The notes: generated by a model from the sequence alone, not told the origin. A stretch of 64,000 nucleotides of DNA from IMGVR_UViG_3300023184_000025:1-64000, one strand, 5' to 3'. Positions 1-59,617 are shown, counted from the stretch's first letter. A program made the numbers and translations.

Positions 1-706
1 CATTGAATGGTAATTTATGTAGATACACATATTCACCTTTTCTAATCTTGCCACTGAACAAAACCATTTGTGGATCATTGGGGAACATACCTGTATCTGA
101 CCCAGCAGTAGTTAGACCCATTGCTATGGCAACTTTAGGATCAGAGGTAGCATAGATAGCATTTTGATTACTACCAGCCGCACCACCTGTATCTACCGAT
201 TGTCTTGGCTCTAGCATAGGAATCTTTTGTCTTGACCCATGCCAAAGATAGGTATTAATAACTTTGCCTTCCGCCACACCTTGCTGTATGGTGCTTAGTC
301 TAGCAAGTTCTTGTTCACCTTCGGGAGTCAGTAACCAATAGCCGTCGGCATCTACAATCCAACCAGCGTCATATAAACTGTCATACACTCTACTTTGGGC
401 ACGGCTTAGACTCTGACTATCTTCTTGAAATCCCAAACCATGATCATTTGCAACTTCAATGGCTTTAAGTAACAAGGCTTTGCCATAACCTTTGCCGCGT
501 ACATCGTCAGTTACTTCTGCCTGATTGTGTACGTCTTCAGTCTCAGGATCCCTATAGAATGAAAAATGTCCAACATTTTTTCCATCAGCGATTGCAGTAA
601 CAGTAAAACTACTTTGATAGTTGTCTGTGGATGCTGTGCGGAATTGTACTGCCGATGCGTCTGCTTCGCCAAGGAAGCCTTCAGTGATAAACTCTTGTGC
701 TCTCAT
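1..706 (-). CDS. Partial polyprotein (runs off the window edge): capsid-targeting-like leader + GNAT acetyltransferase domain + ADP-ribosyltransferase-like domain
   Basis: Not in the ORF track; translated by hand from the ATG at 706. MRAQEFITE|G...; GNAT acetyl-CoA motif VRGKGYGKALL; linker QQGVAE|G; then YLWHGS...LEPR...AIYATSDPKVAIAMG (H-G-S and Y-x-T/S pattern of Arr/ART-like folds). No stop codon down to base 2. Confidence 0.75.
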   Translation of the reverse strand, partial: MRAQEFITEGFLGEADASAVQFRTASTDNYQSSFTVTAIADGKNVGHFSFYRDPETEDVHNQAEVTDDVRGKGYGKALLLKAIEVANDHGLGFQEDSQSLSRAQSRVYDSLYDAGWIVDADGYWLLTPEGEQELARLSTIQQGVAEGKVINTYLWHGSRQKIPMLEPRQSVDTGGAAGSNQNAIYATSDPKVAIAMGLTTAGSDTGMFPNDPQMVLFSGKIRKGEYVYLHKLPFN

Positions 707-1375
707 TTAATACACCAAACTATCTATACGTTTATATTTTATATTAAACGCATTCATTAATAATTCTACTTCACGCAGGCATTCGTCTCTGCCGCCACCA
801 ACCAAGTATGCACCATTAAAACGCTTTAGTTGACCAACACTGGCCCAGCCCACAGTCATTGGATCATCTTCCATTTCTTCTATGGCACCTTGAATCAAAC
901 TTTGTGTAGTAGTACGACGATTAAAGGCAGGGAACTCTAGGTCTCTAGTGTCAGAAACTTGTTGTGCGTACATTTCACGTATGGTTGCAATGATGGTACT
1001 TGGTTCTATTCCGTGATCCATCCAGCTACGGAGGTAGCCATAACCTTTGTCTACTATTTGAAAGCGACGCCAATCTACGGGACTTTTGGGCTCGTTGTAA
1101 TAGTCATCACCATTCTCGTCTTCGCCTTCTTCGCCTTCGGTTCCTAGTGTTTCGTCCCAGAATTGTTGTATCTGTTGAACGGAATCCCCACTCAGGCCTT
1201 GATCTTCAGCATTGACAAAGAACAGCACAGGACCAGTTTGCTTTTGTACAAAATTCATTATTTGAATAAACTTTGGATTGGCAGGTGGCCAGGGTCCGCC
1301 ATTGTATTCAGGTTGAACATCAACACAAATAACTGGCTGACTTAGGCCTTCAACAATAAAATCCTGTGCTCTCAT
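707..1375 (-). CDS. Cysteine hydrolase (isochorismatase/nicotinamidase-like) with capsid-targeting-like leader
   Basis: VICVDVQ (catalytic Asp), IVDKG (Lys) and LVGGGRDECL (Cys) match the D-K-C triad layout; N-terminus is MRAQDFIVE|G. Confidence 0.6.
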   Translation of the reverse strand: MRAQDFIVEGLSQPVICVDVQPEYNGGPWPPANPKFIQIMNFVQKQTGPVLFFVNAEDQGLSGDSVQQIQQFWDETLGTEGEEGEDENGDDYYNEPKSPVDWRRFQIVDKGYGYLRSWMDHGIEPSTIIATIREMYAQQVSDTRDLEFPAFNRRTTTQSLIQGAIEEMEDDPMTVGWASVGQLKRFNGAYLVGGGRDECLREVELLMNAFNIKYKRIDSLVY

Positions 1376-3462
1376 TACATTTTACCTGATGTCTTTAATG
1401 TAGGTGGTGTGCCAGCGGCAGTGGTATGCCAGCCCATTTTTTTGGCTTGGCGTTGTACTTCTCCGGGCTTGATGTCCACAGTTAAGGCCATACTGTAACG
1501 TGGATCACGAGCTTCCTGGTCATTAATGGGGATGTAGCCTGATGCTTCTGCTATTGGTTTTATTCTACTTAATTCGTACATGACTTTGTTGCCGGTGTCA
1601 GCACGGAAAGCACGGAAGCCCAAAGCCTTTGCATAACGCTGAACCAAACTGTCATACAGTCTTGCCCTGGTCATTGCTTTTCTTTGATCCTCATCTGGGT
1701 TAACTTCTTTTGAAGCCGAAAAGTATATTTTGTTGGGCTTGTATCTTCCCTTGGCGCCAGGCACCCTGTCAGAAACAAATGTTTGAACAGCACTTAACAC
1801 AGTGGCAAACACACGCTGTTGATCACCCTCGCCTGTTTTTTCTTGACTGTTGTTTCTATAAAACTCAACACTCCATGCTTCCTCTTTTGTATCTTGACTA
1901 AATCCCTTGGTAAACATGACACTTAGAAAGGTATTGTCATCTAATCGTGCTATTGCGTCTACATCACCATGGTCACCCTTTTCCCATCGAAGTATTTTAT
2001 AGGGTTGGTCTAATGATTCATTAACATCTTCGGGTACTACTTGCCCTTGGCGACGACGCAGATCATCTTTCATGCGCTGTAATAATTCTTCGCGAGCACC
2101 GGCAACGCCCATGTGCTTGATGGTCTGCGACGCACGCCCTATGGTTTGTATATCCTTGACTGTTTGTCCAACACCATTGGTGGTGGCGCAACCAGGTGTG
2201 CCGGCTATGCATGCTGCCGCAGCCACGGCTGCTAGTCGGTCTTTGACAGATTCCTCTAGTGGCATATCTTTAAAGAATTCTGGATACTGATCAACCCAGT
2301 GACGCATAATGCGGCCTGCCATGGCATTGGCTTCGTCTTCGTAAGGGGATCCTGTTTCACCTGCGTCCACAGGCATGTCAGCTAGTTCGTCTTGGCGAGC
2401 GTGTGTGAGCTCATGTGCTAGAGTACGCAAAATATCTAGCACATGACGGCCACTTACTGCCAGTGTAACTGAACGTGTTTCATGATCAAATTGACCGAAT
2501 GTGCCGTTTCTACGTGTCCATTCCGGGTCACGTTTTAATATGATTTTTGGGGCTTGTTCAATTCCGAGATACTCAACACAACTATCAATGAATGGTTGTA
2601 GTACTTGCTTAATGTCTTGATTAATGTCTGGAGATTCTGTGTTTTCTTGTACACTTTCGCCGCCACCATCGCCACCCTCGCTGTTGCCAAACGAGAATCC
2701 AGGCATCCAGTACCCACCATATCCGTAGCGTACTTTCTTTTTCTTGCGTTCTTGTAAACTTAGTTCATGATCTTTTGCGGCAAGCCTAGCTTCACGCAGT
2801 CGGTCAATCAAGCCGCTGGCCCTCAACAGTTTAAATGCTAGATTTTCTGGACCAAATTCTCCAGTATTGGCCAGGCCGGTTGTGCGCATTTCACGTATCT
2901 TTTTAGCCAGCAATTCCATGCGCTGTCTATCACCATCGGCAATGGCTGACTCAATTCTGCGTCCTAGATCTTCGTACTTGCTACGTGTGCTCATGTCATC
3001 AACCACAGCTTGTTGACGTTTTGGAACTTGTAGCCAGTCATTGTTCAACACTGAATACTCTCCTTGGCTTACTGGAGGTTGGTTGGCATTCTGTACATAT
3101 AACTCAACATCGTAGCCGCCAATTTTAAAATTGTGCTGATCGTTATACTGATATTTTTTAGCATCAAACAGTTCACGATAAACTTCGCTGGCATCAGCCT
3201 TGGGTAAATCTACTACCAAGTGTAGATCAATGTCTGAGTGTGGTGTATATGTGTAGGCGGCGTTTGAACCAGATATTGTGACGTCTTTTAGTTCAATGTC
3301 TGTTAGGCCAAGGAATTCACGGAAGTCATCCGCAATTGCCAATAGATGTTCACGAACATCAGGGAGAAGATTTTCGTCCTCTCCCCAAATGCGTGGGTTT
3401 AACTTGTCGTTAAACTTGATTGCGTTGCTTAAACGATAGGAATCTAGTTCATGAATGTTCAT
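1375..3462 (-). CDS. Multi-module polyprotein: Pol-beta-type nucleotidyltransferase + HExxH zinc metallopeptidase + further unknown modules
   Basis: ISGSNAAYTYTPHSDIDLH...VELY (GS, DxD, third acidic residue); LAHELTH...EDEANAMAG (zincin); modules separated by VQE|N, LEE|S, VNE|S and IAE|A. Confidence 0.75.
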   Translation of the reverse strand: MNIHELDSYRLSNAIKFNDKLNPRIWGEDENLLPDVREHLLAIADDFREFLGLTDIELKDVTISGSNAAYTYTPHSDIDLHLVVDLPKADASEVYRELFDAKKYQYNDQHNFKIGGYDVELYVQNANQPPVSQGEYSVLNNDWLQVPKRQQAVVDDMSTRSKYEDLGRRIESAIADGDRQRMELLAKKIREMRTTGLANTGEFGPENLAFKLLRASGLIDRLREARLAAKDHELSLQERKKKKVRYGYGGYWMPGFSFGNSEGGDGGGESVQENTESPDINQDIKQVLQPFIDSCVEYLGIEQAPKIILKRDPEWTRRNGTFGQFDHETRSVTLAVSGRHVLDILRTLAHELTHARQDELADMPVDAGETGSPYEDEANAMAGRIMRHWVDQYPEFFKDMPLEESVKDRLAAVAAAACIAGTPGCATTNGVGQTVKDIQTIGRASQTIKHMGVAGAREELLQRMKDDLRRRQGQVVPEDVNESLDQPYKILRWEKGDHGDVDAIARLDDNTFLSVMFTKGFSQDTKEEAWSVEFYRNNSQEKTGEGDQQRVFATVLSAVQTFVSDRVPGAKGRYKPNKIYFSASKEVNPDEDQRKAMTRARLYDSLVQRYAKALGFRAFRADTGNKVMYELSRIKPIAEASGYIPINDQEARDPRYSMALTVDIKPGEVQRQAKKMGWHTTAAGTPPTLKTSGKM

Positions 3463-3483
3463 AAACTATATTTACCGCTTTGA

Positions 3484-4428
3484 TTACTTAGATGCTTTTG
3501 TTTTCTTTTTAGCTAGAGCAGGCGTTTCTATTGCCTTGACTGATTTAGCCACTGCTTTAACTGGCTTGGCTTCTGTCTTGCCTTGTTTGGCTGTTTCTGT
3601 AACAGGTGATTCATTACTGGCAATAACTCGAGAAGTTGCAGACACCTCTTGTTGAGCTAACTGTGCATCTGCTAGTTTCTTAGCTTCAACATTTGCCTTG
3701 GCAATAACACTAAGGTCTTCGTACAATTTGTCCTGTGTGTTAAAATCAAACACATAGGTGCCGGTGTGCTTGAGCAATACCCGCTTGTCAATCCAGACTT
3801 TACCACCAATATCGCGCCAGTTTTCGCAGAATGTCCAGTCTTCTGAATAGTAGCGACCTTCGCGTACTGCTGTGTCGTAATATGTCTTCATGTATGGATC
3901 TAATTCTACTGGTAATCCAATGTCGTTTTTAAAGGGTTTGACTGCTTGATGTACATTGAGTTTATCAAATACATTGCGTTTTACCAACATAAAACCTGTG
4001 CCTGTTTTGCTAACTTCTTGAAGGTTGCCGTCTTCGCTGACTTCTGCATTTTCAAAACCATTAACTACCCACTTGATTGGCAAAGTTTTCATTGGATATA
4101 ATCCGCCAACAACATCTTTTTGTGAATCAAGAAGTACTAGTAAATGCCAAGGTTCCCAACCAATGTCTGCATCAATGAACATCAGGTGTGTTGAGTCTGG
4201 GTTGTTTAAGAATTTAGCAACCAGTGTATTTCTAGCACGGCTAATTAATGATTCATTGGTCATGGTTTCCATGGTCCACTCAATGCCAAGTTGTCGGCAA
4301 GTGTTGGCCCATTTGATATAACTCATGAATGTGCTTTCAGTTAACATGCCACCGTAGCAGGGCATACAGATATGCACTCTAGTGGTGCGCAGGTAGTCAA
4401 CGTTGACTTGGATTTGTTGTTCAGCCAT
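3484..4428 (-). CDS. GT-A fold glycosyltransferase-like protein with Lys/Ala-rich C-terminal tail
   Basis: SLISRARN, LMFIDADIGW (DxD), GTGFMLVKR and SEDWTFC motifs. Confidence 0.75.
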   Translation of the reverse strand: MAEQQIQVNVDYLRTTRVHICMPCYGGMLTESTFMSYIKWANTCRQLGIEWTMETMTNESLISRARNTLVAKFLNNPDSTHLMFIDADIGWEPWHLLVLLDSQKDVVGGLYPMKTLPIKWVVNGFENAEVSEDGNLQEVSKTGTGFMLVKRNVFDKLNVHQAVKPFKNDIGLPVELDPYMKTYYDTAVREGRYYSEDWTFCENWRDIGGKVWIDKRVLLKHTGTYVFDFNTQDKLYEDLSVIAKANVEAKKLADAQLAQQEVSATSRVIASNESPVTETAKQGKTEAKPVKAVAKSVKAIETPALAKKKTKASK

Positions 4429-4629
4429 ATGTTCCTCGTAAAAATATGTACTTCTATTTAACTACGTACAAAACCCTGGCTATTTTTTTACTGGCGAAGT
4501 TATGATGCTATTTTTAATCCAACGCCTAAAACCATTACCTTACTGCAATTTCTTAGTGGAGTCATCAATACATTAGGAGATCCATGCTGTACTGTCTTGA
4601 CAGGTAACTTTGGCGGATGAACGCGACGT

Positions 4630-5622
4630 TTACTTGTTTGTTTCATCAATATAGTCATTGTTTTCGCCAATGTCAATTTCTCGACCACGTGCAATTGGAC
4701 GTCTGCCTTGCTTGTCTGAGAAATCCTCCAACCTTGCCAACGCTTGAACTTTACTTTGCATGGCACCGGCTTTGTACATTAAATGTTCAACTCCTCGATA
4801 GTTACCAACTTTGAGCATTTCTGCTAACTCAACTAATTGTTTTACTAAACTGTTTTTAAGACTGCCTTCGTTCCAGGTTCCAAGTCCACCAGTGGGACGA
4901 ATTTGAACTCCGTCATCAGGATCATTGACCAGGGTAGCTTCGTCAACTTCTTTATCAGGACCGTTTGGCATTGGCATTCCTGCATTCAATCCTCCGGCTC
5001 CTACACCAAAGGCTGGGCCTTGTAGTGCTTCTTTTACATCATTGCCCATGCCTGCATCAATTAGTTTAGTTGTTACATTGGTTAACTTTTCGTTACCTTG
5101 GGTCTGTGGATACAGTGAATTAACCAATGAGGCTTTTTGTTCTGACGACATTGCAGGCCATTTAGCACGAATTTCTGTGGCACTGGTCATGCCTGAGCCA
5201 AACTGTACCACAGGCAAATATGCTATGTAAGCATGCTGAGTCATTGGCTGTAGACCTGTGCGCTTGTATGGTTGTAAGTAGCCAGCACTACCATCCTTTT
5301 TTACATCGCCTGGCACGGGCTGTTCGTTACGATCCTTTTCACTGCGTACAAAAATTAATTGTGTGCTACCAGGATCATAATGCTGTGTAATTTCATTGGC
5401 ACGGAAAGGACTTTTAACCTGAATAAATCTGTGTGCAGGAATGCCGGCTAATTTTGCTAGTTTTTGTTTGACTGCAAAAGGAAAAGGTCTTGTTGAAGTA
5501 TCTGCTGTGGCGGCAATATAAACGTCGGCACTAGGGAAAGCCGCTTGGGCCGAATCGTATAGAGCTTTATGGCCTGCGTGAAAGGGGTGGAAACCACCGG
5601 GCATAATGACTAGTTTTTTCAT
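4630..5622 (-). CDS. HxGH (cytidylyl/adenylyltransferase-like, NadD/CoaD superfamily) protein with C-terminal extension
   Basis: PGGFHPFHAGH and TSATEIR motifs; the C-terminal part is set off by VKE|A and VDE|A. Confidence 0.7.
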   Translation of the reverse strand: MKKLVIMPGGFHPFHAGHKALYDSAQAAFPSADVYIAATADTSTRPFPFAVKQKLAKLAGIPAHRFIQVKSPFRANEITQHYDPGSTQLIFVRSEKDRNEQPVPGDVKKDGSAGYLQPYKRTGLQPMTQHAYIAYLPVVQFGSGMTSATEIRAKWPAMSSEQKASLVNSLYPQTQGNEKLTNVTTKLIDAGMGNDVKEALQGPAFGVGAGGLNAGMPMPNGPDKEVDEATLVNDPDDGVQIRPTGGLGTWNEGSLKNSLVKQLVELAEMLKVGNYRGVEHLMYKAGAMQSKVQALARLEDFSDKQGRRPIARGREIDIGENNDYIDETNK

Positions 5623-5636
5623 ACCTTATATTTAGC

Positions 5637-6619: not shown

Positions 6620-7354
6620 TTATGCTTTTATTAAGGTTACAGTTTTTCTGACTGTGCTTGGACTCACAAGACTAAGCATACTTACAAAAGATTCGTGATC
6701 GTATTCTACAAAAAAGTTTCCATACAAATAACAGTACTCGTCTTTTTTTACCCAATGTGTAAGTGCAGGCCCTAATCTTATTTGCCCTTCGTAGTTTTTT
6801 AAGAAATTAACCAAATAACTTTTTTGTTGTTTGGTTATTTTTCTATCTTTAAAATATAAACGATAAGAATGCTTTGGATTTTTTAATCTAATGGTACCTT
6901 TTGCAAACGCTACATTAATCTGATATACGTGTACATTTTTTATAAACGGTAATTTGGATAATTCTTCTATATATTTTTTATTGTTGGTGTATAGATATCC
7001 ATAGCCGCCTGACTGTATTATTAGTCTTTTGGTATCCGATTCTAACGTATAAAAATTATAGAACGACAATAAATTTTCTTCTACTTCATCACCAATGGGC
7101 AATCCCTCTGATCGGCTGTGCCAGTTTCCTCCCCAATTAACGTGTCTTAGGTGATCTTTGAATTTTTTTCGTTGAGACAAGTTCCAAGAAATCATCTTAC
7201 GATCTTTATCAGGATCATTTTTTAAATTTCTTAGACAAGGTAATTCTTGAAGATAGAAAACAGCCCTATACTCAAATTGATCAAAGTATAGCTGGCTTGA
7301 ATTAACTACTTCAAACTCTGGGTTTGAATTGATCAAGGATAATGTATCCATCAC
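6620..7354 (-). CDS. Hypothetical protein
   Basis: 244-aa ORF downstream of clpA. Confidence 0.6.
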   Translation of the reverse strand: MMDTLSLINSNPEFEVVNSSQLYFDQFEYRAVFYLQELPCLRNLKNDPDKDRKMISWNLSQRKKFKDHLRHVNWGGNWHSRSEGLPIGDEVEENLLSFYNFYTLESDTKRLIIQSGGYGYLYTNNKKYIEELSKLPFIKNVHVYQINVAFAKGTIRLKNPKHSYRLYFKDRKITKQQKSYLVNFLKNYEGQIRLGPALTHWVKKDEYCYLYGNFFVEYDHESFVSMLSLVSPSTVRKTVTLIKA

Positions 7355-9602
7355 TATTAACTGTAGGTTGAGTTGTTTCTTGCACAGGCACGTTTATGTT
7401 TGTTTCAAAGTAAATTTCTCCATCCTTTACAACAACATTTATATTGCAATCAGCAAGACGGTCAAATAAAATTTTTCTACTTAACGGAACACGAATCAGC
7501 TCGTCAATTTTTCTACCCAATGGTCGAGCTCCCATTAATGGATCATATCCACGGTCAGCCAATAGTTCAACTGCTGGCTCTGTTAAAGTTAGTTTAATAT
7601 TTTTATTAACCAAACTAGTTTTTAGTTCATCGACAAATTTGATAACAATTTTCTTAATTGCTAGTTTATCAAGCTTGCCAAATTTACAGACTGCATCCAA
7701 GCGATTTCGTAATTCAGGTTTAAAAAACTCTTTAAAGGCACGATCATCTTCGCCAGTTTTTGCCATGTCTCCAAAGCCAATGTTATTACGTTCACTGTCA
7801 GCACTACCAAGATTACTGGTCATAATAACAATGGTATTTTTACAATCAACTGTTTTTCCGTTGCTACCTGTAATTTTTCCTTCATCAAGCAATTGTAGAA
7901 AGATGTTACTTACATCAGGGTGCGCTTTTTCTACTTCGTCAAATAATAATATCGAAAATGGGTGCTTGCTCAAGTCGCTAATTAATTTGCCACCACCAAG
8001 ATTGCCATCCTCAAACCCAACATAGCCTGGCGGTGCACCAATCAAACTTGATACAGTATGCTTTTCCTGATACTCACTCATGTCGTACTTGAGTAATGTC
8101 ATATCAAGGTATTCAGCCAACATACGTGCCAATTCAGTTTTACCTGTACCAGTTGGCCCCAAGAACAAGAAACTAGACATTGGTTTTCTTGTTGTATTAA
8201 TGCCAGCAAAACTTACATAGATACGATCTAGTACTGTGTCAATGACCTGGTCTTGACCGTATACTCGTTGTTTGATATTACTTTCAAGATCAATAATACG
8301 TGTGCTCTGTTGATTGGCCAAGTGATCCATTGGTACACCGGCAACACGACTGACCTGTTGCATAATTAACTCTTTTGTGACTGTTAATGTACCTGCATCC
8401 TTGACCCTTTCACGAGCACAGGCAGCATCAATTAAATCAATGCTTTTGTCGGGATTCTTTTTGTCATGAATGTAACGACCACTTAGTTCAACTGCTGATA
8501 TAATAGCATCTGTGTCAATCATCACATTGTGAAACTTTTCCAGTCGCGGACTGAGTCCAATAAGAATTTTTTCTGTAGTTTCTTTGTTTGGTTCGTCGAT
8601 ACTGAGTCGATAGAATCTACGCATCAACGCACGATCTTTTTCAAAGCTTTCGTAGTACTCTTCCCAGGTTGTGCTGGCCACAACTTTAAGTACACCTTTG
8701 GTAATTGCTGGCTTGATCATATTAGCAAAATCAAGCTGGCTTTGTCCTGAACTGCCTGCTCCACGCATGGTGTGTGCTTCGTCAATAAACAGCACACAAT
8801 TCTTTTTACTTTCTAATGCATCAATTACCTGTTTGAGTTTTTCTTCAAACTCGCCGCGATACTTTGATCCAGCTAGTAAACTTCCGATTTCCAAACTCCA
8901 CACTTCATGATCTCTAAGGAAACTAGGAACATCATTGTTGACAATTCGCTGTGCCAGGCCTTCAATGATGGCAGTTTTGCCCACACCCGGATCTCCTACC
9001 ATTAGCACGTTGGCTTTAAATCTACGTGCTAACACAGTGACCATTTCTTCAATGTCTTTTTCTCTGCCAATCACTGGTTCAAGTTGATCTTTTTTTGCCT
9101 GATCGGTAATGTTGGTACAATGTTCTTCAAGTATCTCTGTGGCCTGTTGATTGGTGATTTTAACATCGCCGTGTTTGTAATTCTGTTCCCAAAATTTTAC
9201 AAACTCTGCTTTTGTTACACCATATTTGAGCAAGAAGTAATGTGCATGACTATTGTTTTCACTCATAAGAGCAAGATAAAGATCAATGGTGGTAATTACT
9301 CGTCGACCGGTGAACAATACTTGTGTCAGCGCACGATTAAAAATACGTTCTAGTGCATTTGTTTTTCGAGGTTGTATATCTTCTTTACTACTGCGTAAGT
9401 TTGTCAAACTTTCTAGATACGCATTAAGTTCTGACTCAAGCATGTCTATTTCTAAACCAAAATTAATTAATACAGTTCTAAATGGATTGTATTGTAGCAA
9501 CGACAGTAGCAAATGCTCAGTTAACACATACTCGTGTTTTTTGTCTCGAGCAATTCTAACTGCCGCATCAATAATTTGTTCAATTTCGGGATTATTTTGC
9601 AT
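7311..9602 (-). CDS. clpA: ClpA-like Hsp100 AAA+ unfoldase
   Basis: Clp N-domain (EHLLL), two Walker A motifs (GDPGVGKT, GPTGTGKT), LFIDEAH, DMSEYQEKH, LIGAPPGYVG and a ClpP-docking IGF loop; no ClpB coiled-coil M-domain. Confidence 0.92.
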   Translation of the reverse strand: MQNNPEIEQIIDAAVRIARDKKHEYVLTEHLLLSLLQYNPFRTVLINFGLEIDMLESELNAYLESLTNLRSSKEDIQPRKTNALERIFNRALTQVLFTGRRVITTIDLYLALMSENNSHAHYFLLKYGVTKAEFVKFWEQNYKHGDVKITNQQATEILEEHCTNITDQAKKDQLEPVIGREKDIEEMVTVLARRFKANVLMVGDPGVGKTAIIEGLAQRIVNNDVPSFLRDHEVWSLEIGSLLAGSKYRGEFEEKLKQVIDALESKKNCVLFIDEAHTMRGAGSSGQSQLDFANMIKPAITKGVLKVVASTTWEEYYESFEKDRALMRRFYRLSIDEPNKETTEKILIGLSPRLEKFHNVMIDTDAIISAVELSGRYIHDKKNPDKSIDLIDAACARERVKDAGTLTVTKELIMQQVSRVAGVPMDHLANQQSTRIIDLESNIKQRVYGQDQVIDTVLDRIYVSFAGINTTRKPMSSFLFLGPTGTGKTELARMLAEYLDMTLLKYDMSEYQEKHTVSSLIGAPPGYVGFEDGNLGGGKLISDLSKHPFSILLFDEVEKAHPDVSNIFLQLLDEGKITGSNGKTVDCKNTIVIMTSNLGSADSERNNIGFGDMAKTGEDDRAFKEFFKPELRNRLDAVCKFGKLDKLAIKKIVIKFVDELKTSLVNKNIKLTLTEPAVELLADRGYDPLMGARPLGRKIDELIRVPLSRKILFDRLADCNINVVVKDGEIYFETNINVPVQETTQPTVNSDGYIILDQFKPRV

Positions 9603-9678
9603 AGGTTTCCTATTAGGTACTGCGATAATTCTTTAATTATAAACTCAATATGTTAAAAACACAAGCAGTACGGTTAAA

Positions 9679-10470
9679 TTATTTATTTGACTGATCTTTA
9701 AGGATATCTATTATTTCATCTGGAATATGGTCGGGCATGACTGCATTTAATTTAATCATGATATCTCCTGTTGTTCCATTGTTTGAACGCAGACCTAGTC
9801 CTCGTAATCTCAATGTGGTGTTTGGATTAGTCATCGGAGGAACAGTCACTGACATTTCTCTACCTCTAAGGTCTTGTACTACTGCGTCAGTACCGATAAT
9901 TAATTCCCAAAAAGATGCATTGTGTTTGGCATAAAGATCATTGCCTTGTCTTGACCAAATTGGGTGTGGATGGATTCTAAACTGCACAACAAGATCGGAG
10001 TTACCCGGTCCGATACCCGGATAACGTATGTTAGATCCGTCTTCAACGCCTTCGGGTATGTGTATTTCAATTGCTGACGTGCCTAAATTTGATGTCACTG
10101 CTACAGTTCTTGCGCCACCAGTGACTACGTCGTCGAGCTTGATCCATAATGTCATACGTTGAAACGACTGTCTCGGTTGATTAACATTCATCCTAGCGCC
10201 AAACATATTAAAAATAGCATCCATATCAAATGGGTCCTGGCCGGCACCCGGACCACTAGATCTAAAATTAAAATTAGTCTGTGGAGTATCGTATTGTGCT
10301 CGTTTTTCTGGATCACTTAGTGTTCTGTATGCTTCTTCTACTTCTTGAAACTTTTTTGTATCACCACCCTTATCTGGATGGTGCTGGCTGGCCAGCTTAC
10401 GATAAGCTTTTTTAATTTCATCAGCGGCAGCAGTTTTGGGCACACCTAATGTGGCATAGTGATCTGTCAT
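9679..10470 (-). CDS. DnaJ class B (CbpA-like) co-chaperone
   Basis: J-domain with HPD motif, G/F-rich region and DnaJ C-terminal domain; no zinc finger. Confidence 0.9.
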   Translation of the reverse strand: MTDHYATLGVPKTAAADEIKKAYRKLASQHHPDKGGDTKKFQEVEEAYRTLSDPEKRAQYDTPQTNFNFRSSGPGAGQDPFDMDAIFNMFGARMNVNQPRQSFQRMTLWIKLDDVVTGGARTVAVTSNLGTSAIEIHIPEGVEDGSNIRYPGIGPGNSDLVVQFRIHPHPIWSRQGNDLYAKHNASFWELIIGTDAVVQDLRGREMSVTVPPMTNPNTTLRLRGLGLRSNNGTTGDIMIKLNAVMPDHIPDEIIDILKDQSNK

Positions 10471-49237: not shown

Positions 49238-49645
49238 TTACTTAACTAATACGTAGGGCTTGCTCCACTCACCAATATTCAAGTGAATGTAAAAAGCGGT
49301 GTCAAAATAATCTGTCATTGCATCACTGCGGTCGTACCACTGACGCTCGGGTGAAGTTTTAATGATACGCAAGAACTGATCGATTGCGTCCTTGGCTTCG
49401 CCAGTAAAATGATCTTGGAACCAGTAGGGGTTAATCTGCATGTAACCTTCTGCAAGACGACTGTCAACATGACGGTGATCTATGGTCTGATTGTGATTTT
49501 CAAAGAAATCAATAGGACCAGATTTAACAGTGACTTCAACGCTGAGCGAACCACTGCCTTTACGGGCACTGAATTTAAACTTGGGGAATTGTGCTTTGAG
49601 TGCTTCGCGAATTGACTTGACTTCTTGTGCTCCGATGTATGCCAT
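49238..49645 (-). CDS. Hypothetical early protein (LPD29-like)
   Basis: IR.ALK..FP..KFS.R and DRSDAMTDYFD motifs. Confidence 0.6.
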   Translation of the reverse strand: MAYIGAQEVKSIREALKAQFPKFKFSARKGSGSLSVEVTVKSGPIDFFENHNQTIDHRHVDSRLAEGYMQINPYWFQDHFTGEAKDAIDQFLRIIKTSPERQWYDRSDAMTDYFDTAFYIHLNIGEWSKPYVLVK

Positions 49646-49712
49646 TTTCTGCTCCTGTTTTGTTAGTGTATGTGTATATTATAGCAAATTGGGAATTATT
49701 GGTCAACCAAAA

Positions 49713-49964
49713 TCAATTGGCCATCAAATTGATTTGGACCTGGTGACCTTCGTGTGTAATCACGGTGCCCACTGGCCGGCCTTCGCCCAGAACTGGACTA
49801 CGACGACGAATTTCCGCCAGATACTCCACAGCATATCGCAGAGCCGCACCATGTGATACTGTGGCTGTTTTTGTAAAAACATCGTTGATGGTTGCGTACA
49901 TACCAAATCCGTCAATGATAAAACGAATTCGGGTGCTGTTGCTAAAACCAGATACATGACGCAT
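49713..49964 (-). CDS. Hypothetical protein
   Basis: 83 aa with Shine-Dalgarno (GAAAGGA). Confidence 0.55.
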   Translation of the reverse strand: MRHVSGFSNSTRIRFIIDGFGMYATINDVFTKTATVSHGAALRYAVEYLAEIRRRSPVLGEGRPVGTVITHEGHQVQINLMAN

Positions 49965-49976
49965 TTTGCTTTCCTT

Positions 49977-50240
49977 TCAGCGGCTGAGATTCATAACACG
50001 GGCATCAAATTCCATGAAGCTGACTTCAAATGGAACCGATACTTCTTTGCCAACACGGCCAGCATCTTCGGCATCGCTCCAGCTGTCTTTGGTTACTACA
50101 ATCACAAAACAATCGTAGCCACGGTTGTCAATTTTTTGAACAACACCTTCAACAAAACAATCTTCGCGGCCTACCATGGGTTTGAAGTCATATGCACGGA
50201 TTGTGTCGCCAACTCGGGCAATTTTTGCAAATTTTAACAT
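49977..50240 (-). CDS. Hypothetical protein
   Basis: Likely start MLKF after AGGAG; VGD.IRAYDF motif. Confidence 0.6.
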   Translation of the reverse strand: MLKFAKIARVGDTIRAYDFKPMVGREDCFVEGVVQKIDNRGYDCFVIVVTKDSWSDAEDAGRVGKEVSVPFEVSFMEFDARVMNLSR

Positions 50241-50302
50241 ACCAGCTCCTTTTTGTTTACTATACAAGTATTATAGCAAAATGGGCAATTCTGGTCAACC
50301 AG

Positions 50303-50551
50303 CTATTTCTGCGACTTTTTTAAGCAGAAAAACGTGGCATCTACTGTGTTGCGAAAATACAACAGAACTTTTAACTCTGATTTTCTGCCTTTTCTGCGCC
50401 ATTCTTCGTTGAGAAATTGCACACGATAAAACCAACGTCGACCTGCTTGGGTACCCGGGAGGCCAAACATCTCGGTGGCTGTTGCCACAGCACCAACCTT
50501 CCAATCATCGGTCCAACTAATTTTACCGCCATCAACTCGTGTGGTTTTCAT
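50303..50551 (-). CDS. Small hypothetical protein
   Basis: W..A.E.FGLPG...RW...F....DA..F pattern. Confidence 0.5.
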   Translation of the reverse strand: MKTTRVDGGKISWTDDWKVGAVATATEMFGLPGTQAGRRWFYRVQFLNEEWRRKGRKSELKVLLYFRNTVDATFFCLKKSQK

Positions 50552-50847
50552 TAGTCACCTGAATCAATTTGATAACGATCGCCACAGTGGACACAATCAT
50601 AATTGGTCAAACATCGCCCGGCATTACTGCTTTGATAATGGTGGGTGCATGGATCACCTTGTGAGTTCAATCGGACTTTGCCACGTGGAGTGCCAAACAT
50701 GTACTGACCGCCACAATTAGAACAGCCCAGGGTGTCTGTGTCTTTGTCGTATCCAGAGTATACGTGTTTGTATTTTTGTTGCTCGAGACTCGGTGTCACA
50801 CGACCGGAGCCGTTGCACACAGGACAAGTTCTGTATTCTACTGTCAT
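50551..50847 (-). CDS. Zinc-finger-like protein
   Basis: CPVCNGSG, CSNCGG, C.H and CVHC motifs. Confidence 0.65.
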   Translation of the reverse strand: MTVEYRTCPVCNGSGRVTPSLEQQKYKHVYSGYDKDTDTLGCSNCGGQYMFGTPRGKVRLNSQGDPCTHHYQSSNAGRCLTNYDCVHCGDRYQIDSGD

Positions 50848-50856
50848 TTTATTTCC

Positions 50857-51165
50857 TTACGCAACCAACCACAACAGTTCTTCTTTGACTTCAATGCTTT
50901 CGCTACCGTCGTACTCGTGTATTCTAAATTCAGCACCTACGTCAAGCCAGGCAATTTCTAGATCTCTCATGCCACCATCATAGATGTCAGGATATTTGAG
51001 GCTAACATAAACTGCTAATTCATCCCATTGTTCTTTTTCTACAAAATCTACAATCACAGGATTAAACAACAGCTCGGGCAACTCTTGATTCCAAGTTGAC
51101 CAACCAGCACCAAAGCCGGGTGAGTATAATACTGCTACTTTACCGTCTCTGATTATTTTTTTCAT
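50857..51165 (-). CDS. Hypothetical phage protein
   Basis: VAVLYSPGFGAGWSTW and EYDGSE motifs. Confidence 0.7.
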   Translation of the reverse strand: MKKIIRDGKVAVLYSPGFGAGWSTWNQELPELLFNPVIVDFVEKEQWDELAVYVSLKYPDIYDGGMRDLEIAWLDVGAEFRIHEYDGSESIEVKEELLWLVA

Positions 51166-51344
51166 TATTTGACTCCAAAATGTTCTTTGATCTGCATCAT
51201 AGCATCGTCATAGCCATTTAGATACAAGTTAGACATGCATTCTCTCACAATCAACTCGGCAAACTGTTCATAATCAAAATATAGTACAGTACCTTTATCA
51301 CAAACCTTGCATTGACTGTGCAATTGTCGAATTCGGTCGTTCAT
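51165..51344 (-). CDS. Small hypothetical protein (59 aa)
   Basis: Hand-translated MNDRIRQL...FAELIVREC...IKEHFGVK*. Confidence 0.6.
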   Translation of the reverse strand: MNDRIRQLHSQCKVCDKGTVLYFDYEQFAELIVRECMSNLYLNGYDDAMMQIKEHFGVK

Positions 51345-51574
51345 TCTACAATTCCTACACTTTTCTTAATCTCATAACGAGCAATCTTCTCGTCAAAGTA
51401 CATGCGAGTACCTTCATTGAAAGGGCTCGCTACCACAATCTCGCCTAGCTCTGTGGCTAATAATTGTGCAAAGCGAGCAAGAATACTCTGAGTGTCTTCC
51501 ATCTGGTCCATGGGGTCTCGGTCCAGAATCACTTGGTAATCATTAATGAGTTTTTGTACGTTCTGATGAATCAT
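51341..51574 (-). CDS. Hypothetical protein
   Basis: Likely start MIHQNVQKL with GGAG upstream. Confidence 0.5.
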   Translation of the reverse strand: MIHQNVQKLINDYQVILDRDPMDQMEDTQSILARFAQLLATELGEIVVASPFNEGTRMYFDEKIARYEIKKSVGIVE

Positions 51575-51715
51575 TTTAGACTCCGGTATGCAAAGGGTTA
51601 CGTCGACGCAGGTGGGCCAGTGCCCCTTCCTTGGTTTCAAAACGTCCTGAGATGGGCGTTTGATGTGCGCCACGCACAATGTACCAACCACCTAGCAAAG
51701 CATTATATACGACTT

Positions 51716-51976
51716 TCATACTGCCTCCGCTGTTTTAGGAAAACGATCATAAGCCTCACTGGCTCCGTCACATGAGAATTTGCTAGAGCCAAACTGATTG
51801 ATCACATGCACAAGGATGTCATCATAAGCGGCCCACTCAATGCACTCTTTGCGAGCTGTTTGATAGTTATTTGTTGTCAACAAAATTTGACGCCCGAATA
51901 CATCTATGACAGCATCTTCCTTGGATGATACTTTAGTTACTACTCGATATTTGTAAGGCATGTTACCGTATCGCAT
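51716..51976 (-). CDS. Hypothetical protein
   Basis: Likely start MRYGNM after GGAG. Confidence 0.5.
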   Translation of the reverse strand: MRYGNMPYKYRVVTKVSSKEDAVIDVFGRQILLTTNNYQTARKECIEWAAYDDILVHVINQFGSSKFSCDGASEAYDRFPKTAEAV

Positions 51977-51977
51977 A

Positions 51978-52256
51978 TCAATTGCTCCAAAATGCTTCGC
52001 TGTCAACTCGGCAAGCCCAAGGTGTATCAGCGTCGATTTCCACAGGAACACCTGTCATTAAATTACGAACAGTGATCTTGGGTGCGGTGTAAGTGTCACG
52101 GCTCACAATGTTCAATTGGCTTTCGTTCCAACCTGCTTTGTTGCAAAGACGGGTGCGAGTTGCTTTGGCGGCACCAAAAGTTTTGTATGCACGGGTTCGG
52201 TTGGGACCGTCAGTAACAATTAAACCAGTACCTTTTGAGACGATTACGTATGACAT
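51978..52256 (-). CDS. Hypothetical early protein
   Basis: Own promoter and AGGAG; V.NLMTG...I..DTP..C motif. Confidence 0.65.
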   Translation of the reverse strand: MSYVIVSKGTGLIVTDGPNRTRAYKTFGAAKATRTRLCNKAGWNESQLNIVSRDTYTAPKITVRNLMTGVPVEIDADTPWACRVDSEAFWSN

Positions 52257-52311
52257 ATCTAACTCCTTTTTAATTACTATACAAGTATTATAACAGATCG
52301 GAATTTATTGG

Positions 52312-52665
52312 TCAATCTAACCGTGAACCTGCGTAAACACGATCCAGACCCAGCTTGTTCTTCAGTACTTCGGCATAGGCTTCTGCACCCGCTTCCAAGA
52401 TGCTGATGCTTTGGGTAGGATAACCGCTGGGATTCCACATGCACAAGGAGCCGGTGTAGTCTTTACGGAAGCCGTGAGCCTGAAGTGCTTTGCCAATCTT
52501 GCTGTTAGAACGAACACCCCAAACGTTGACCCAGGCAAACCCACAGGCATCACGATCACCGTGTTTTGCATAAAACGCCTTGGCGGCTGTACGGGCGGCC
52601 ATTGCGGCTTCGTTGCAAGCGTCCTGGACTGCTTCTACATTTACTACTGTTGCGATTGCCTTCAT
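52312..52665 (-). CDS. Hypothetical early protein
   Basis: CGFAWV, QS....EAGA.AYA..L and SRLD motifs; own promoter. Confidence 0.7.
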   Translation of the reverse strand: MKAIATVVNVEAVQDACNEAAMAARTAAKAFYAKHGDRDACGFAWVNVWGVRSNSKIGKALQAHGFRKDYTGSLCMWNPSGYPTQSISILEAGAEAYAEVLKNKLGLDRVYAGSRLD

Positions 52666-52801
52666 TTCAAACTCCTTTTTAATTACTATGCTGTTATTAT
52701 AACAAATTGGGTATTTTTGGTCAACCGTTTTGTGTGTTGTGAAAAAACAACACTTTCTGTCTATTTTTTAAGCAGATTTAGTGTTGTTTTTACGCAACAG
52801 T

Positions 52802-53203
52802 TTAAAGCTCAATGGCTCTGCGGAACAGGATTTCTTGCTTGGAAAATGCTTGGATTTCCCAAGGCTGTTCCAGATACGGAACCCGGCGTCCGTAGTACTT
52901 GCCTTTCCACAGTTTGCCACGTGGAGTTAACTGTAGTGTGCCTTTGGCAAATTGTGCAACATGGGTGAGCTCGTGTGCTAGAGTGGCGCCCATGGCCTGC
53001 AGATCTTTAACAGGCTTGAGCACAACCAAATAGGTGTCCAGACCTTTGAGAGGAACTGTGGTACCCAGGTCTTCAAGATCAGGGTCTAATATGATGTGCA
53101 GGAGTTTTTTATGTTTTGTGAGCTTCAACTGCTCTATCATAGAAGGTAGAAGTGATTCTACGTATTTTCTAGATTTAGTGGTGCCTTCAACATAAAATTC
53201 CAT
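52802..53203 (-). CDS. HExxH zinc metallopeptidase-like protein
   Basis: TLAHELTHVAQ...Y.EQPWE.QA. Confidence 0.75.
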   Translation of the reverse strand: MEFYVEGTTKSRKYVESLLPSMIEQLKLTKHKKLLHIILDPDLEDLGTTVPLKGLDTYLVVLKPVKDLQAMGATLAHELTHVAQFAKGTLQLTPRGKLWKGKYYGRRVPYLEQPWEIQAFSKQEILFRRAIEL

Positions 53204-53304
53204 GCATTACTCCTTGTTGCTATAACTTCTATTATAACAAACCAGGGAATTCCAGTCAACCAGCTATTTCTGCTTAATTTTTAAGCAGTTTTTGGGTGTT
53301 GTTT

Positions 53305-54006
53305 TTACGCAACAAAATCTATGTAACCAGATTCAGCAGTCCAGTCCATAGTTGACAATTTCTTTGCAATAGCAGTCAGTGTTTCTTCTTTAGAAAACTC
53401 TGAATTCTTTTTAATCCAACGTTGGTGGTTCTTTGCCAACACATCAATGTTGTTTGTCCAACCTTGTTGCTGTAGGTTGTTGACAAAATTTTCTTTAAAC
53501 AACAAATTAAAATTAATGTTTTTACCGTAGGTATTTGCAACACGATCGTACATGGTCTGCATCCATAATCTTTTTGATTGTTCAAACCAATACGAAGCGG
53601 CTTTTTCAAACTTTCCATTGAGGCAAAGAGTTTTAGCTATCTCAAACCAAGATTCGCCAGGTGCCACTTTAATTGCAAGTTTTTGTAGTTTCATTTGTCT
53701 TAGAACAACTTGTTCTTGCACTTGTGGATCAGTGACTATAATATTAATTAATGACCAGTTGCTGTTGATAATTGGCTCAAATAAATGTGTGCTAACAAAT
53801 CCATTTGGGGGTGTTGGCAATTGTTGAACAGCATCTTCCACAGACATTTCGTTGTCTTGTATTTTTCTTTCAAACTTTTTTAAAGAATAGTCAGAGGGAA
53901 CACTGATACCAGACATGCGAGTTAACAAAATACCATTGCAACTGGTCACAAATAAATCACCGGCGGTGCCTCCGTTGTAGGAAACAAAAGTATAATCAGT
54001 ATTCAT
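53305..54006 (-). CDS. Hypothetical protein, weakly sulfotransferase-like
   Basis: Likely start MNTDY; FVSYNGGTAGDLF...STH. Confidence 0.4.
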   Translation of the reverse strand: MNTDYTFVSYNGGTAGDLFVTSCNGILLTRMSGISVPSDYSLKKFERKIQDNEMSVEDAVQQLPTPPNGFVSTHLFEPIINSNWSLINIIVTDPQVQEQVVLRQMKLQKLAIKVAPGESWFEIAKTLCLNGKFEKAASYWFEQSKRLWMQTMYDRVANTYGKNINFNLLFKENFVNNLQQQGWTNNIDVLAKNHQRWIKKNSEFSKEETLTAIAKKLSTMDWTAESGYIDFVA

Positions 54007-55027
54007 TTTTATGTTTGCAGATATGAGAAAGCCAACTGGGATTCCAGCGATCAATTAAATCCTTCTGTAACTGTCCTGTGGCCAGTTGTTTAATCAAATC
54101 CTCTGTGTCTAGACTGATCACCGTCAAAAACAATTCAGGGTCTCTGTAAGGATCTAGTATTTGAAAATCACCAAACCATTGCTGGAACGTTGGTCTCGAA
54201 TGCAATTTAACAATTGCTGATCTCAATAAATTAACATTGTCAAATGTATGCTCAGGGCCATATGTTGCAGTATCGTAACAGTCAAATTTTTGATCAACTA
54301 ATTTTGAAGATTGTGCGTACAGTTCACCGTGATGCAAGAGTGCCAGATCGCCGTAGTATCCTGTGACCAAGTTGTTAATATTGTAAAATGCCGGCTTGAC
54401 ATTGTCTATCTGACTATACGGATAATCTATTGTTTCTTGAGTGTCACTGTAGACCACGTCAAATGGAAGTTTGTTAAAATAAGACCTTGTGTGATTGGCC
54501 ACAACTCCAGTAAACTCAACCTGATGATGCAATGCCAAAAACGCAAGAGTACTGGAGTCAAGTCCGCCCGAGAATGCAATCTGTGTTTTATCACTGATGT
54601 TTGCGCAAGTTTGTAAATTAGACAACAACCTTAGCTCAATGTCAACAAGTACCTGTTCCCAAGTTTTAATTTCAGGAACAATAGCAGATTTGATTTTTTT
54701 ATACTGTAACCAATTGATTCCCAGCTCGTCGTGACAATTAAATTTAACCGTCAACGGAGATATTGCTGTGTCTATGTACTTGTTAATATTGGTAAGAATA
54801 ATGCCTTTGCCAAACCCAAGATTAAAATCTTTATAAAAACTAAACTCAACTGTGACTTCTTCGTCACCAAACTCAAACTCAACAAAGTTTCCACCGTGCT
54901 CGCCTAAACGATAACCAAAAAATTTATCTTGATTAATATTATAGTAGGCATTAACCCAAAGATGAGGGGCTAGTTGATGACGATATGGGAACTCTGTGAG
55001 CTCTTGTTCAGCGATGCAAAAGTACAT
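53996..55027 (-). CDS. Asparagine-synthetase-like (PP-loop) protein
   Basis: IAFSGGLDSS, VTGYYGD and PYRD motifs. Confidence 0.65.
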   Translation of the reverse strand: MYFCIAEQELTEFPYRHQLAPHLWVNAYYNINQDKFFGYRLGEHGGNFVEFEFGDEEVTVEFSFYKDFNLGFGKGIILTNINKYIDTAISPLTVKFNCHDELGINWLQYKKIKSAIVPEIKTWEQVLVDIELRLLSNLQTCANISDKTQIAFSGGLDSSTLAFLALHHQVEFTGVVANHTRSYFNKLPFDVVYSDTQETIDYPYSQIDNVKPAFYNINNLVTGYYGDLALLHHGELYAQSSKLVDQKFDCYDTATYGPEHTFDNVNLLRSAIVKLHSRPTFQQWFGDFQILDPYRDPELFLTVISLDTEDLIKQLATGQLQKDLIDRWNPSWLSHICKHKNEY

Positions 55028-57195: not shown

Positions 57196-57314
57196 AGTAT
57201 CTTTCTTTCGGTGTTAATGAAAGTATCATCGTTACAAGCACCATGCTCGATCTGTTTGATACCGTTCAAGTGTTAGTATAACAAAGTGTCAATTATTTGT
57301 CAACCTAGTACTTT

Positions 57315-59597: not shown

Positions 59598-59617
59598 TCA
59601 TTATAGCACAAGTTGTA

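Follow-up and report, generated by a model that had tools for sequence, protein, structure and literature searches.

Proteins that travel in a phage head and are injected into the host are hard to predict from sequence and are known for few model phages. Here we analyze IMGVR_UViG_3300023184_000025:1-64000, a 64,000-nucleotide stretch of DNA that we refer to as the window, and in particular its first 5.6 kb, where five genes (g1 to g5) all lie on the minus strand. As an initial annotation had pointed out and translation confirms, the adjacent genes g4 (start at 1375) and g5 (start at 706) open with near-identical leaders, MRAQDFIVE↓G and MRAQEFITE↓G, the arrow marking the candidate cut site. 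Several genes of the block also carry internal joints ending in [VIL]-x-E, the motif type that closes the leader. On sequence comparison, leader and internal [VIL]-x-E joints are interchangeable across hundreds of homologues, and this pairing of leader and linkers recurs on hundreds of environmental contigs from related phages.

Organization of the locus

The genes and modules of the block are listed in window coordinates; residue numbers refer to each protein.

706..<1 (window edge), minus strand: g5, starting MRAQEFITEG; full length 452 amino acids at L001:10670-12028
680..706, minus strand: g5 leader MRAQEFITE, predicted cut after Glu9 (from translation); predicted local distance difference test (pLDDT) below 50 for residues 1-16
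269..679, minus strand: g5 module 1, residues 10-146, GNAT acetyltransferase ending QQGVAE146↓G (Pfam Acetyltransf_1, E 1e-6; Foldseek GNAT matches); recurs elsewhere with other partners and orders
1..268, minus strand: g5 module 2, residues 147-300 (147-235 inside the window), starting GKVINTYLWHGS; no Pfam or PDB match
Outside the window, minus strand: g5 module 3, residues 301-452, ParB/sulfiredoxin-like (Pfam PF02195 in relatives; Foldseek Srx, probability 0.99)
1375..707, minus strand: g4, 222 amino acids, starting MRAQDFIVEG
1349..1375, minus strand: g4 leader MRAQDFIVE (from sequence)
707..1348, minus strand: g4 cargo, residues 10-222, with invariant D19, K110 and C199 and core motif IVVDVQP (464 representative relatives)
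3462..1375, minus strand: g3, 695 amino acids
2749..3462, minus strand: g3 module 1, residues 1-238, Pol-beta/ANT-like nucleotidyltransferase ending LSLQE238↓R (phrog_36119, E 3e-41; Foldseek ANT(9)/AadA, probability 0.98)
2644..2748, minus strand: g3 basic Gly/Tyr-rich spacer, residues 239-273, RKKKKVRYGYGGYWMPGF..GGESVQE273↓N; pLDDT below 50 for residues 241-281
2251..2643, minus strand: g3 module 2, residues 274-404, putative metallopeptidase with HExxH motif (HELTH, 350-354) ending PLEE404↓S; near-invariant E351 and H354, residues 282-398 folded
2017..2250, minus strand: g3 segment, residues 405-482, beginning SVKDRLAAVAAAACIAGTPGC and ending EDVNE482↓S; low pLDDT at 399-460 and 473-483
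1546..2016, minus strand: g3 module 3, residues 483-639, DUF6934-type, SLDQPYKILRWEKGD.., ending KPIAE639↓A
1378..1545, minus strand: g3 module 4, residues 640-695, ASGYIPINDQEARDPRYS..
4428..3484, minus strand: g2, 314 amino acids, glycosyltransferase-like with a low-complexity tail (phrog_1574, E 2e-39)
5622..4630, minus strand: g1, 330 amino acids, with an HxGH nucleotidyltransferase motif at its start
5029..5622, minus strand: g1 module 1, residues 1-198, cytidylyltransferase-like with HxGH motif (GGFHPFHAGH), no leader, ending GNDVKE198↓A; weak Pfam and PHROG matches
4633..5028, minus strand: g1 linker, residues 199-228 (ending KEVDE228↓A), and C-terminal module, residues 229-330; no family match

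Genes g3, g4 and g5 follow one another without gaps, and the g4 start codon overlaps the g3 stop codon (TAATG), which suggests that the two are translationally coupled. The trio g1-g2-g3 is kept together in five other loci (L122, L093, L057, L040 and L111). Within it, g2 has no leader and shows no module shuffling; it is probably an ordinary conserved enzyme gene and a neighbor of the cargo genes.

The window edge cuts the block. By exact-protein look-up, the window forms the start of a 345-kb JGI contig, and in overlapping assemblies the locus runs on leftwards for at least 7 kb, a continuation that the initial annotation had missed. The next gene after g5, just outside the window, encodes 139 amino acids starting MRAQEFIVSE (g6), and beyond it further genes start MRFNELQE↓T, MRLREITE↓S and MNLNTLFE↓N..SVAE↓Q, with repeated GVAE↓[GA] joints. 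Because leader-type genes and these joints continue past the edge, the block in the window is the truncated end of a larger, hypervariable locus of putative cargo.

The leader is conserved as a peptide

The N-terminus MRAQ[ED]FI[VT].E is shared by g4, g5 and g6, and BLASTP finds no similarity between g4 and g5 beyond the nine-residue leader. The 64-kb window holds only two leaders of the MRAQ[ED]FIxE type, those of g4 and g5; the third, that of g6, lies just outside it. Distant from the block, a 247-amino-acid open reading frame (window 58854-59597) starts MTATMTDLILE↓NTMNL, possibly a divergent leader ending in aliphatic-x-Glu.

A degenerate DNA pattern for MRAQ[ED]FIxE matches at least 120 viral stretches in IMG/VR, for about one match expected by chance (our own estimate from the information content of the pattern, not computed by a tool), and nearly all matches are located at the start of open reading frames. 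The leader codons vary synonymously at every position (AGA/CGA, GCN, CAA/CAG, GAA/GAG, TTT/TTC, ATH), and the DNA upstream of leader genes is unconserved. These two observations rule out a DNA repeat, a promoter or a regulatory cassette as the cause of the conservation. The leader is, on this comparison, conserved only as amino acids, and selection acts on the peptide.

What the leader precedes is highly diverse: 100 distinct leader proteins fall into 41 unrelated first-module families. The leaders of g5 and g4 end in I-T-E9↓G and I-V-E9↓G, that is, in aliphatic-x-Glu at the border of the predicted mature protein. As the initial annotation had noted, the leader resembles that of T4 internal proteins; IPII and IPIII start MKTYQEFIAE↓A.

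Internal joints mark the borders of shuffled modules

All seven linkers listed in the initial annotation exist: GVAE146↓G in g5; VQE273↓N, LEE404↓S, VNE482↓S and IAE639↓A in g3; VKE198↓A and VDE228↓A in g1. The motif [ILV]-x-E has a background frequency of 1.7% of positions; being common, it is insignificant in its raw form, and it is its invariance at junctions that the alignments mark as significant.

Database searches show the three g5 modules, at 85-99% identity, recurring in hundreds of proteins with varied partners and orders, most of which begin with the leader. The g3 modules and the g4 domain are likewise reshuffled among partners, and when module order is compared across homologues, as had been suggested, the modules shuffle rapidly, at exactly these junctions. 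Among the distinct 6-mers found upstream of g5 modules 2 and 3, 49 of 61 end in [VILM]-x-E (background 1.7% per position); in all 47 homologous proteins, which represent 36 distinct contexts, module 2 comes directly after ..[VIL]-x-E↓, and E300 is the sole invariant column of the g5 alignment. At the S483 junction of g3, all 44 distinct upstream contexts, some of them leaders like MRAQDFIKE↓AFDKPYK, have Glu as the residue before the cut (P1); at the A640 junction 21 of 22 do. The tetrapeptide GVAE occurs 145 times against 2.7 expected.

Leader and linker replace each other directly in front of the same module, and the residue with which the cargo begins after a leader is the one that directly follows internal [VIL]-x-E joints in homologues. 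Thus MRAQEFIIE↓GKLSVDVPNEEW in L106 matches ..KQGVAE↓GKLSVDVPNEEW in g5; MRAQDFIKE↓AFDKPYKLL, also in L106, matches ..EDVNE↓SLDQPYKIL in g3; MRAQEFITE↓NFADGRHPE in L082 matches ..VMKE↓NFADGKKPG in g6; and MRAQEFITE↓SWSQKYKNSINCS (SWSQKYK) in L045 matches ..SVAE↓QWSQKYKSSINCS (QWSQKYK) in a 552-amino-acid protein. Some proteins open MRAQEFIVE↓GVAE↓GK, with both elements in series. Among the 464 representatives of the g4 family (50% identity), [LIVF]-x-E↓ stands before the IVVDVQP domain in 52 embedded copies and, as an N-terminal leader, in about 60 others; these leaders include the T4-like MKTYKEYLTE↓ (P0312) and MKTFSEFLIE↓. One g3-like polyprotein, P0201, contains an internal g4 domain between QGVAE↓G joints (..QGVAE↓GSLNE↓GLAHPIIVVDVQP). 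Polyproteins of the clade hold 2 to 6 or more modules and reach at least 1862 amino acids in relatives.

Not every listed linker is a module border. Homologue breakpoints and AlphaFold confidence together support E146 and E300 in g5, E482, E639 and LQE238↓R in g3, and E198 in g1. The LQE238↓R site, overlooked in the initial annotation, is the real end of the g3 nucleotidyltransferase module, because 58 high-scoring segment pairs with homologues stop at residue 236 or 237. At the E198 point, the homologues P0035, P0025 and P0165 diverge from g1 directly after ..GVAE↓, and the VDE↓A site of g1 is kept in the L093 homologue. Homologue support for LEE404 as a border is weak. No homologue breakpoint was found at VQE273, which lies inside the basic Gly/Tyr-rich spacer of g3; this spacer acts as a mini-module and stands directly after a leader in L099 and L111.

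Predicted structures and signal-like segments

The placement of the sites in AlphaFold models agrees with these borders. Low-confidence segments fall at residues 1-16, 136-151 and 295-308 of g5 and at residues 1-17, 241-281, 399-460, 473-483 and 636-642 of g3; they coincide with the leader and with the candidate sites E146, E300, E238, E273, E404, E482 and E639. The confident g3 domains flanking the sites span residues 21-240, 282-398 and 484-635, and the remaining [VILM]-x-E triplets of g3 fall within helices. Sites inside folded domains would speak against cleavage as the initial annotation had conceived it; in both proteins the candidate sites lie between confident domains.

Two internal segments resemble export signals. 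Directly after LEE404↓, residues 405-425 of g3 (window 2188-2250), beginning SVKDRLAAVAAAACIAGTPGC, resemble on inspection a lipoprotein signal peptide with a lipobox-like AAAC, and the segment is kept in the homologue consensus. In the 552-amino-acid protein to the left of the window edge (L001:16237-17895), residues 417-445 form a Tat-like (twin-arginine) signal directly after a GVSE joint, ..PQGVSE↓ADMNRRGFLRGLGAAALAGAAGGAMAQSS (Pfam TAT_signal, E 0.01). Only cleavage, or an internal start at its Met, would place it at an N-terminus.

These observations bear on whether the proteins are cut at all. They might be ordinary multidomain fusions, Q-G-V-A-E-G being a flexible linker and recombination joint and the shared N-terminus a translation-initiation or folding cassette spread by recombination. 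Modules 85-99% identical in wholly different architectures do point to very active recombination at the joints, many of the genes are translationally coupled, and part of the motif may travel with its module. Such an account does not explain why selection acts on the leader peptide, as its synonymous codons and unconserved upstream DNA indicate, nor why one and the same first cargo residue abuts N-terminal leaders and internal joints. We consider it unlikely. Cleavage is favored because a P1 Glu and an aliphatic P3 are retained where the sequences on the P side are otherwise very different, and because signal-peptide-like segments, which make sense only when released, sit directly after internal sites (GVSE↓ and LEE404↓).

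Module identities

Two polypeptides of the block combine disparate activities: a GNAT, an unassigned module and a ParB/sulfiredoxin-like module in g5, and an ANT-like nucleotidyltransferase, an HExxH domain, a DUF6934 module and a C-terminal module in g3. Of the functions proposed in the initial annotation, GNAT and the Pol-beta nucleotidyltransferase stand on the matches listed above; the latter occurs as a stand-alone gene in cyanophages and Maribacter phages. The HxGH domain of g1 is matched weakly (Pfam CTP_transf_like, E 0.01; PHROG cytidyltransferase, E 9e-4). The DUF6934 module of g3 has GNAT-like Foldseek matches, and the ParB/sulfiredoxin-like module of g5 is an addition to the original list.

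Two labels could not be confirmed. The 'ART-like' call for g5 module 2 finds no support in Pfam, PDB sequence or Foldseek searches; on inspection we see a resemblance at the motif level (HGS .. IYA .. EYVY). The 'cysteine hydrolase' call for g4 is likewise unconfirmed: the domain has its invariant D19/K110/C199 set, and neither a Pfam match nor a PDB relative was found, including by profile search against PDB.

For the HExxH call, what remains is the motif itself with near-invariant E351 and H354 in the folded domain 282-398; Pfam DUF6782 matches weakly (E 0.07), and Foldseek gives no peptidase match. This domain nevertheless raises the possibility that the polyvalent proteins process themselves, the g3-type zincin-like peptidase or another dedicated phage or host peptidase cutting the [VIL]-x-E linkers either ahead of packaging or once the proteins have been injected, with the leader as its recognition tag and not a scaffold-binding signal. 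Processing of injected polyvalent proteins by zincin-like metallopeptidases was proposed by Iyer et al. 2017 (PMC5512222), and the products encoded at 10800-63200 of the window include a putative metallopeptidase (DUF6782) and an LPD29 'large polyvalent protein associated' domain. Polyproteins of the g1 and g3 types, moreover, have linkers without a canonical leader. The motif, on the other hand, with Glu at P1 and Val, Ile or Leu at P3, is of the T4 gp21 type and matches the capsid maturation site and a head-core protein leader of the clade (see below). Leader genes are also far more widespread than HExxH, g3-like genes being present in 9 of about 120 loci, and the leaders of the g4 family track T4-like leaders in other lineages. 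Self-processing of this kind appears quite unlikely to us.

The same part of the window further encodes PhoH, NAD synthase, Fe/Mn superoxide dismutase, a eukaryotic-type carbonic anhydrase, a TctC-like binding protein, Cpn10, a radical-SAM enzyme and chitinase- or endolysin-like proteins.

Promoter-like boxes

TAAATA boxes stand upstream of three genes of the block.

5629..5634, minus strand: TAAATA box upstream of g1, position -12 to -7
4455..4460, minus strand: TAAATA box upstream of g2, position -32
3469..3474, minus strand: TAAATA box upstream of g3, position -12 to -7

The coding strand holds 23 occurrences of TAAATA. A box lies no more than 60 nt upstream of the start codon in 11 of the 66 minus-strand genes, against about 1.4 expected by chance; besides g1, g2 and g3 these include a 1219-amino-acid gene and large structural-type genes. 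The TAAATA boxes described in the initial annotation are present and enriched upstream of genes, but no full TATAAATA was found, and in g1 and g3 the box ends only 6 nt before the ATG, which is unusually close. TAAATA also ends only 5-7 nt before the start of genes at 6609, 23281 and 41708. If TAAATA served as a -10-like element, the transcripts would be nearly leaderless. Several genes at window 49600-59700 instead bear TATAAT boxes (for example before the starts at 49645, 52665, 53203, 55027 and 59597), which suggests a separate, host-sigma70-like early promoter class; the TAAATA boxes would fit a distinct T4-late-like class.

Phage lineage and the head module of its clade

By sequence relationship, the phage is an uncultured, T4-related jumbo myovirus of the clade of Pseudomonas phage PA5oct and Sinorhizobium phage Phosso. 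Leader contigs carry a T4-type TerL whose best cultured match is PA5oct (51% identical), together with a gp4-like head-closure gene, tail sheath, tube and PolB in PA5oct order. The window phage shares gene order with PA5oct across ClpA (40%), ClpP (53%), clamp loader (54%) and PhoH (50%), and its PolB is closest to that of Phosso (51%).

The head module of PA5oct, the closest cultured relative, is T4-like, with portal gp334, gp333, gp332, protease gp331, scaffold and capsid protein; gp331 is 38% identical to T4 gp21 (E 1e-22). About 200 related environmental head loci keep the order Portal_T4, small protein, Peptidase_S77, scaffold and Gp23, and Peptidase_S77 (Pfam PF03420) is present in 75 of 78 related head loci. 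Across GenBank, the numbers of phage records matched by T4-type TerL (2591), gp21 (2574) and PolB (2535) are nearly equal.

Two features connect this module with the cargo leader. The small protein between portal and S77 protease starts M[KR]A[KRST][DE][LM]LVE↓[FY]YDP, a start that by its sequence belongs to the same leader family as that of the cargo. The capsid proteins of the clade read ..R[FY]L[AV]E↓(N/T/S)A(S/T)AGAT, followed by the mature N-terminus, at a position matching SFLTE65↓A of T4 gp23, and a 66-amino-acid leader family (MRAQEFIKE↓NASVGATSSGS..) aligns across this maturation site. From the virion side, PA5oct gp333 (73 amino acids, MKINDIITE↓GYYN) is annotated as a virion protein detected by mass spectrometry, and so is gp135, a homologue of g3 module 3 (hhalign probability 97.5, E 5e-12) that starts MHLFE↓LFDQ.

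A very common leader family of 55-67 amino acids, MRAQEFIKE↓NASVGATSSGSVATV.. (L012:11641-11838, L029:3148-3342, L089:4168-4368 and L001:15040-15204), mimics the mature N-terminus of the clade's major capsid protein from directly behind the maturation site. It might act as a decoy or competitor, or be an internal peptide. The structural module of leader loci also contains a conserved pair of small paralogues with the leader, one of 121 amino acids (MRAQEFITE..) and one of 127 (MRAREFITE..), both ending ..SPVKGFKGY. The pair sits between a virion-type protein of 650-920 amino acids and the terminase (L034, L044, L013, L100 and L110; for example L034:6631-7376), and PA5oct has nothing at this place before its terminase. 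In a related marine or estuarine phage, L369:16109-20624 holds a gene of at least 2530 amino acids 3 kb downstream of the capsid gene.

The phage also has a chaperone and protease suite in PA5oct order, comprising ClpA-like, DnaJ, two ClpP-like, ClpS and Hsp20 genes (window 7311-10470; L001:20084-20669; L132:17777-18352; L289:1-612). A destination other than the capsid might be imagined: the leader, acting as a tag for degradation or activation, would send the proteins to ClpA/ClpS/ClpP, or else it would direct them elsewhere in the cell, and the cut after Glu would be made in the cytoplasm while infection proceeds. About 8 kb separate one ClpP gene from the block, and RefSeq names the PA5oct ClpP homologue, gp212, 'head maturation protease'. 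This label looks like a mis-annotation, given that gp331 of PA5oct is a true gp21 homologue, and gp212 was discarded as the prohead protease. ClpP, besides, cuts at no defined motifs, and the leader resembles the T4 capsid-targeting sequence and recurs on the small protein between portal and S77 protease. We regard this destination as very improbable.

A proposed model of packaged and cleaved cargo

The explanation that we favor, and hold to be probable, is that T4-style capsid-targeting leaders and prohead-protease sites have been concatenated into polyvalent cargo that releases several enzymes in the head for ejection. The nine-residue propeptide M-R-A-x-[ED]-F-[ILV]-x-E would correspond, in this clade, to the capsid-targeting sequence of T4 internal proteins and would recruit proteins to the scaffolding core of the prohead. 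A Peptidase_S77 of the T4 gp21 type would then cut after Glu in [VIL]-x-E, removing the leader, and would also cut the same motif between concatenated modules (typically Q-G-V-A-E↓G). One gene product may in this way yield several free enzymes or small proteins in the head, among them the GNAT, ParB/sulfiredoxin-like, ANT-like nucleotidyltransferase, DUF6934 and D-K-C hydrolase-like modules, which would be ejected with the DNA and act on the host early in infection. Capsid targeting, S77 cleavage, ejection and anti-host roles are all inferred here from comparative analysis.

The idea of cleavable cargo, already present in the initial annotation, thus gains comparative support from the equivalence of leader and linker and from sites placed between domains, and it does not extend to the whole block: g2 is an ordinary gene, g1 has no leader, and g3 starts with at most a minimal MNIHE↓, although g1 and g3 carry the same linkers. 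Further points weigh against packaging and cleavage. No Peptidase_S77 gene was found within about 115 kb of the phage's own contigs; the gene order of PA5oct would place the head module about 90 kb past the end of the sequence covered. Exact look-up assigned a protease from the same lake series to another phage, and it was set aside. No contig was found with both an S77 protease and leader cargo, there is no MRAxEF gene within 10 kb of about 200 head modules, none of about 240 IMG/VR head loci (retrieved by capsid protein with three queries and one DNA motif) lies on a leader-bearing contig or has an MRAxEF gene close by, and tblastn of T4 head proteins against the window and the leader loci gives no matches. 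GenBank yielded no cultured phage with these modules, either in a near-identity DNA search with the block or in tblastn with the 121-amino-acid leader family and g5. The mass-spectrometry list of PA5oct includes obvious non-structural enzymes, which makes 'detected' weak as a mark of virion proteins. The AlphaFold models are only moderate (mean pLDDT 60 and 67), and junction conservation could stem in part from co-inherited module ends.

A more far-reaching version of this model is tentative, and we rate it as possible and on the doubtful side. An uncultured jumbo-phage clade, abundant in freshwater and marine settings, might use a two-part code, with MRAxEF[ILV]xE as leader and Q-G-V-A-E↓G as joint, to assemble, shuffle and co-package cleavable enzyme cocktails, where cleavage would unmask Tat- or lipoprotein-type signals and some ejected cargo would be re-exported to the host periplasm. 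In that case, metagenomic sequence would by itself reveal the injected effectors.

If the code works as in T4, it supplies a sequence rule by which hundreds of candidates for injected effectors can be picked out in uncultured jumbo phages. The candidates would include acetyltransferase, nucleotidyltransferase, ParB-like, NUDIX, deaminase and hydrolase modules, a rich source of early anti-defense enzymes. One gene would deliver several enzymes in fixed proportion, and the extreme domain-shuffling hotspot would be explained. For the packaging of proteins in T4-type capsids, the leaders and joints would also provide further choices of targeting tag and cleavable linker.

Comparison with known systems

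Shared-leader internal proteins of T-even phages, injected polyvalent proteins and multi-site processing of giant-phage ejection proteins are well known. Our literature search found no description of the MRAxEF leader or its clade-wide spread in uncultured PA5oct/Phosso-like jumbo phages, nor of a cut motif that doubles as an internal joint and makes shuffled polyproteins from leader cargoes.

The Dar system of phage P1 (DarA, DarB, DdrB, Hdf) likewise comprises head-packaged anti-restriction proteins, some of them processed and one with a ParB-like domain, but its proteins are incorporated in order via partner proteins, share no common short leader and belong to another phage family.

In phiKZ-like giants (phiKZ, 201phi2-1 and SPN3US), head-internal proteins are also cut after Glu in a three-residue motif, sometimes at several sites; there are paralogues with conserved N-termini, and proteins are ejected into the host. 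These phages form another lineage and use an S80 protease, whereas the clade described here has S77. Their motifs are S/A/G-x-E or A-x-E, in contrast to V, I or L at P3 in nearly all junctions here, and their propeptides exceed 100 amino acids where this leader has 9. Cleavage there mostly removes propeptides and does not release strings of unrelated enzymes.

The polyvalent proteins of Iyer, Burroughs, Anand, de Souza and Aravind 2017 (PMC5512222), predicted to be packaged in the head, injected and processed by embedded zincin-like peptidases, resemble the present ones in uniting GNAT, nucleotidyltransferase, ParB-like and peptidase domains in one polypeptide (with NUDIX, deaminase and amidoligase in relatives), in having a zincin-like peptidase module (here putative) and in their highly variable domain combinations. 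Their hallmark anchors (MuF, DarB-like helicase or methylase) are not seen in this block, and no capsid-targeting leader or prohead-protease linker code was described for them, unlike the invariant cut motif interchangeable with the leader that we find here.

Another parallel is T4, where gp23, gp24, Alt and the internal proteins lose their propeptides to gp21 and the leader alone directs packaging; T4 Ip1-3 block GmrSD enzymes, and Alt is an ADP-ribosyltransferase. As with IPI, IPII, IPIII and Alt, a short leader is the only common feature of unrelated proteins clustered in hypervariable loci, and it ends in aliphatic-x-Glu, MRAQEFIxE and MKTYQEFIAE both containing QEFIxE. The clade has the T4-type module of portal, S77 protease, scaffold and Gp23, and the cargo is plausibly anti-host. 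In contrast to T4, Val predominates at P3 over Leu or Ile, the leader sequence belongs specifically to an uncultured clade of jumbo phages, some polyproteins are leaderless, and many cargoes are concatenated enzymes separated by internal copies of the cut motif.

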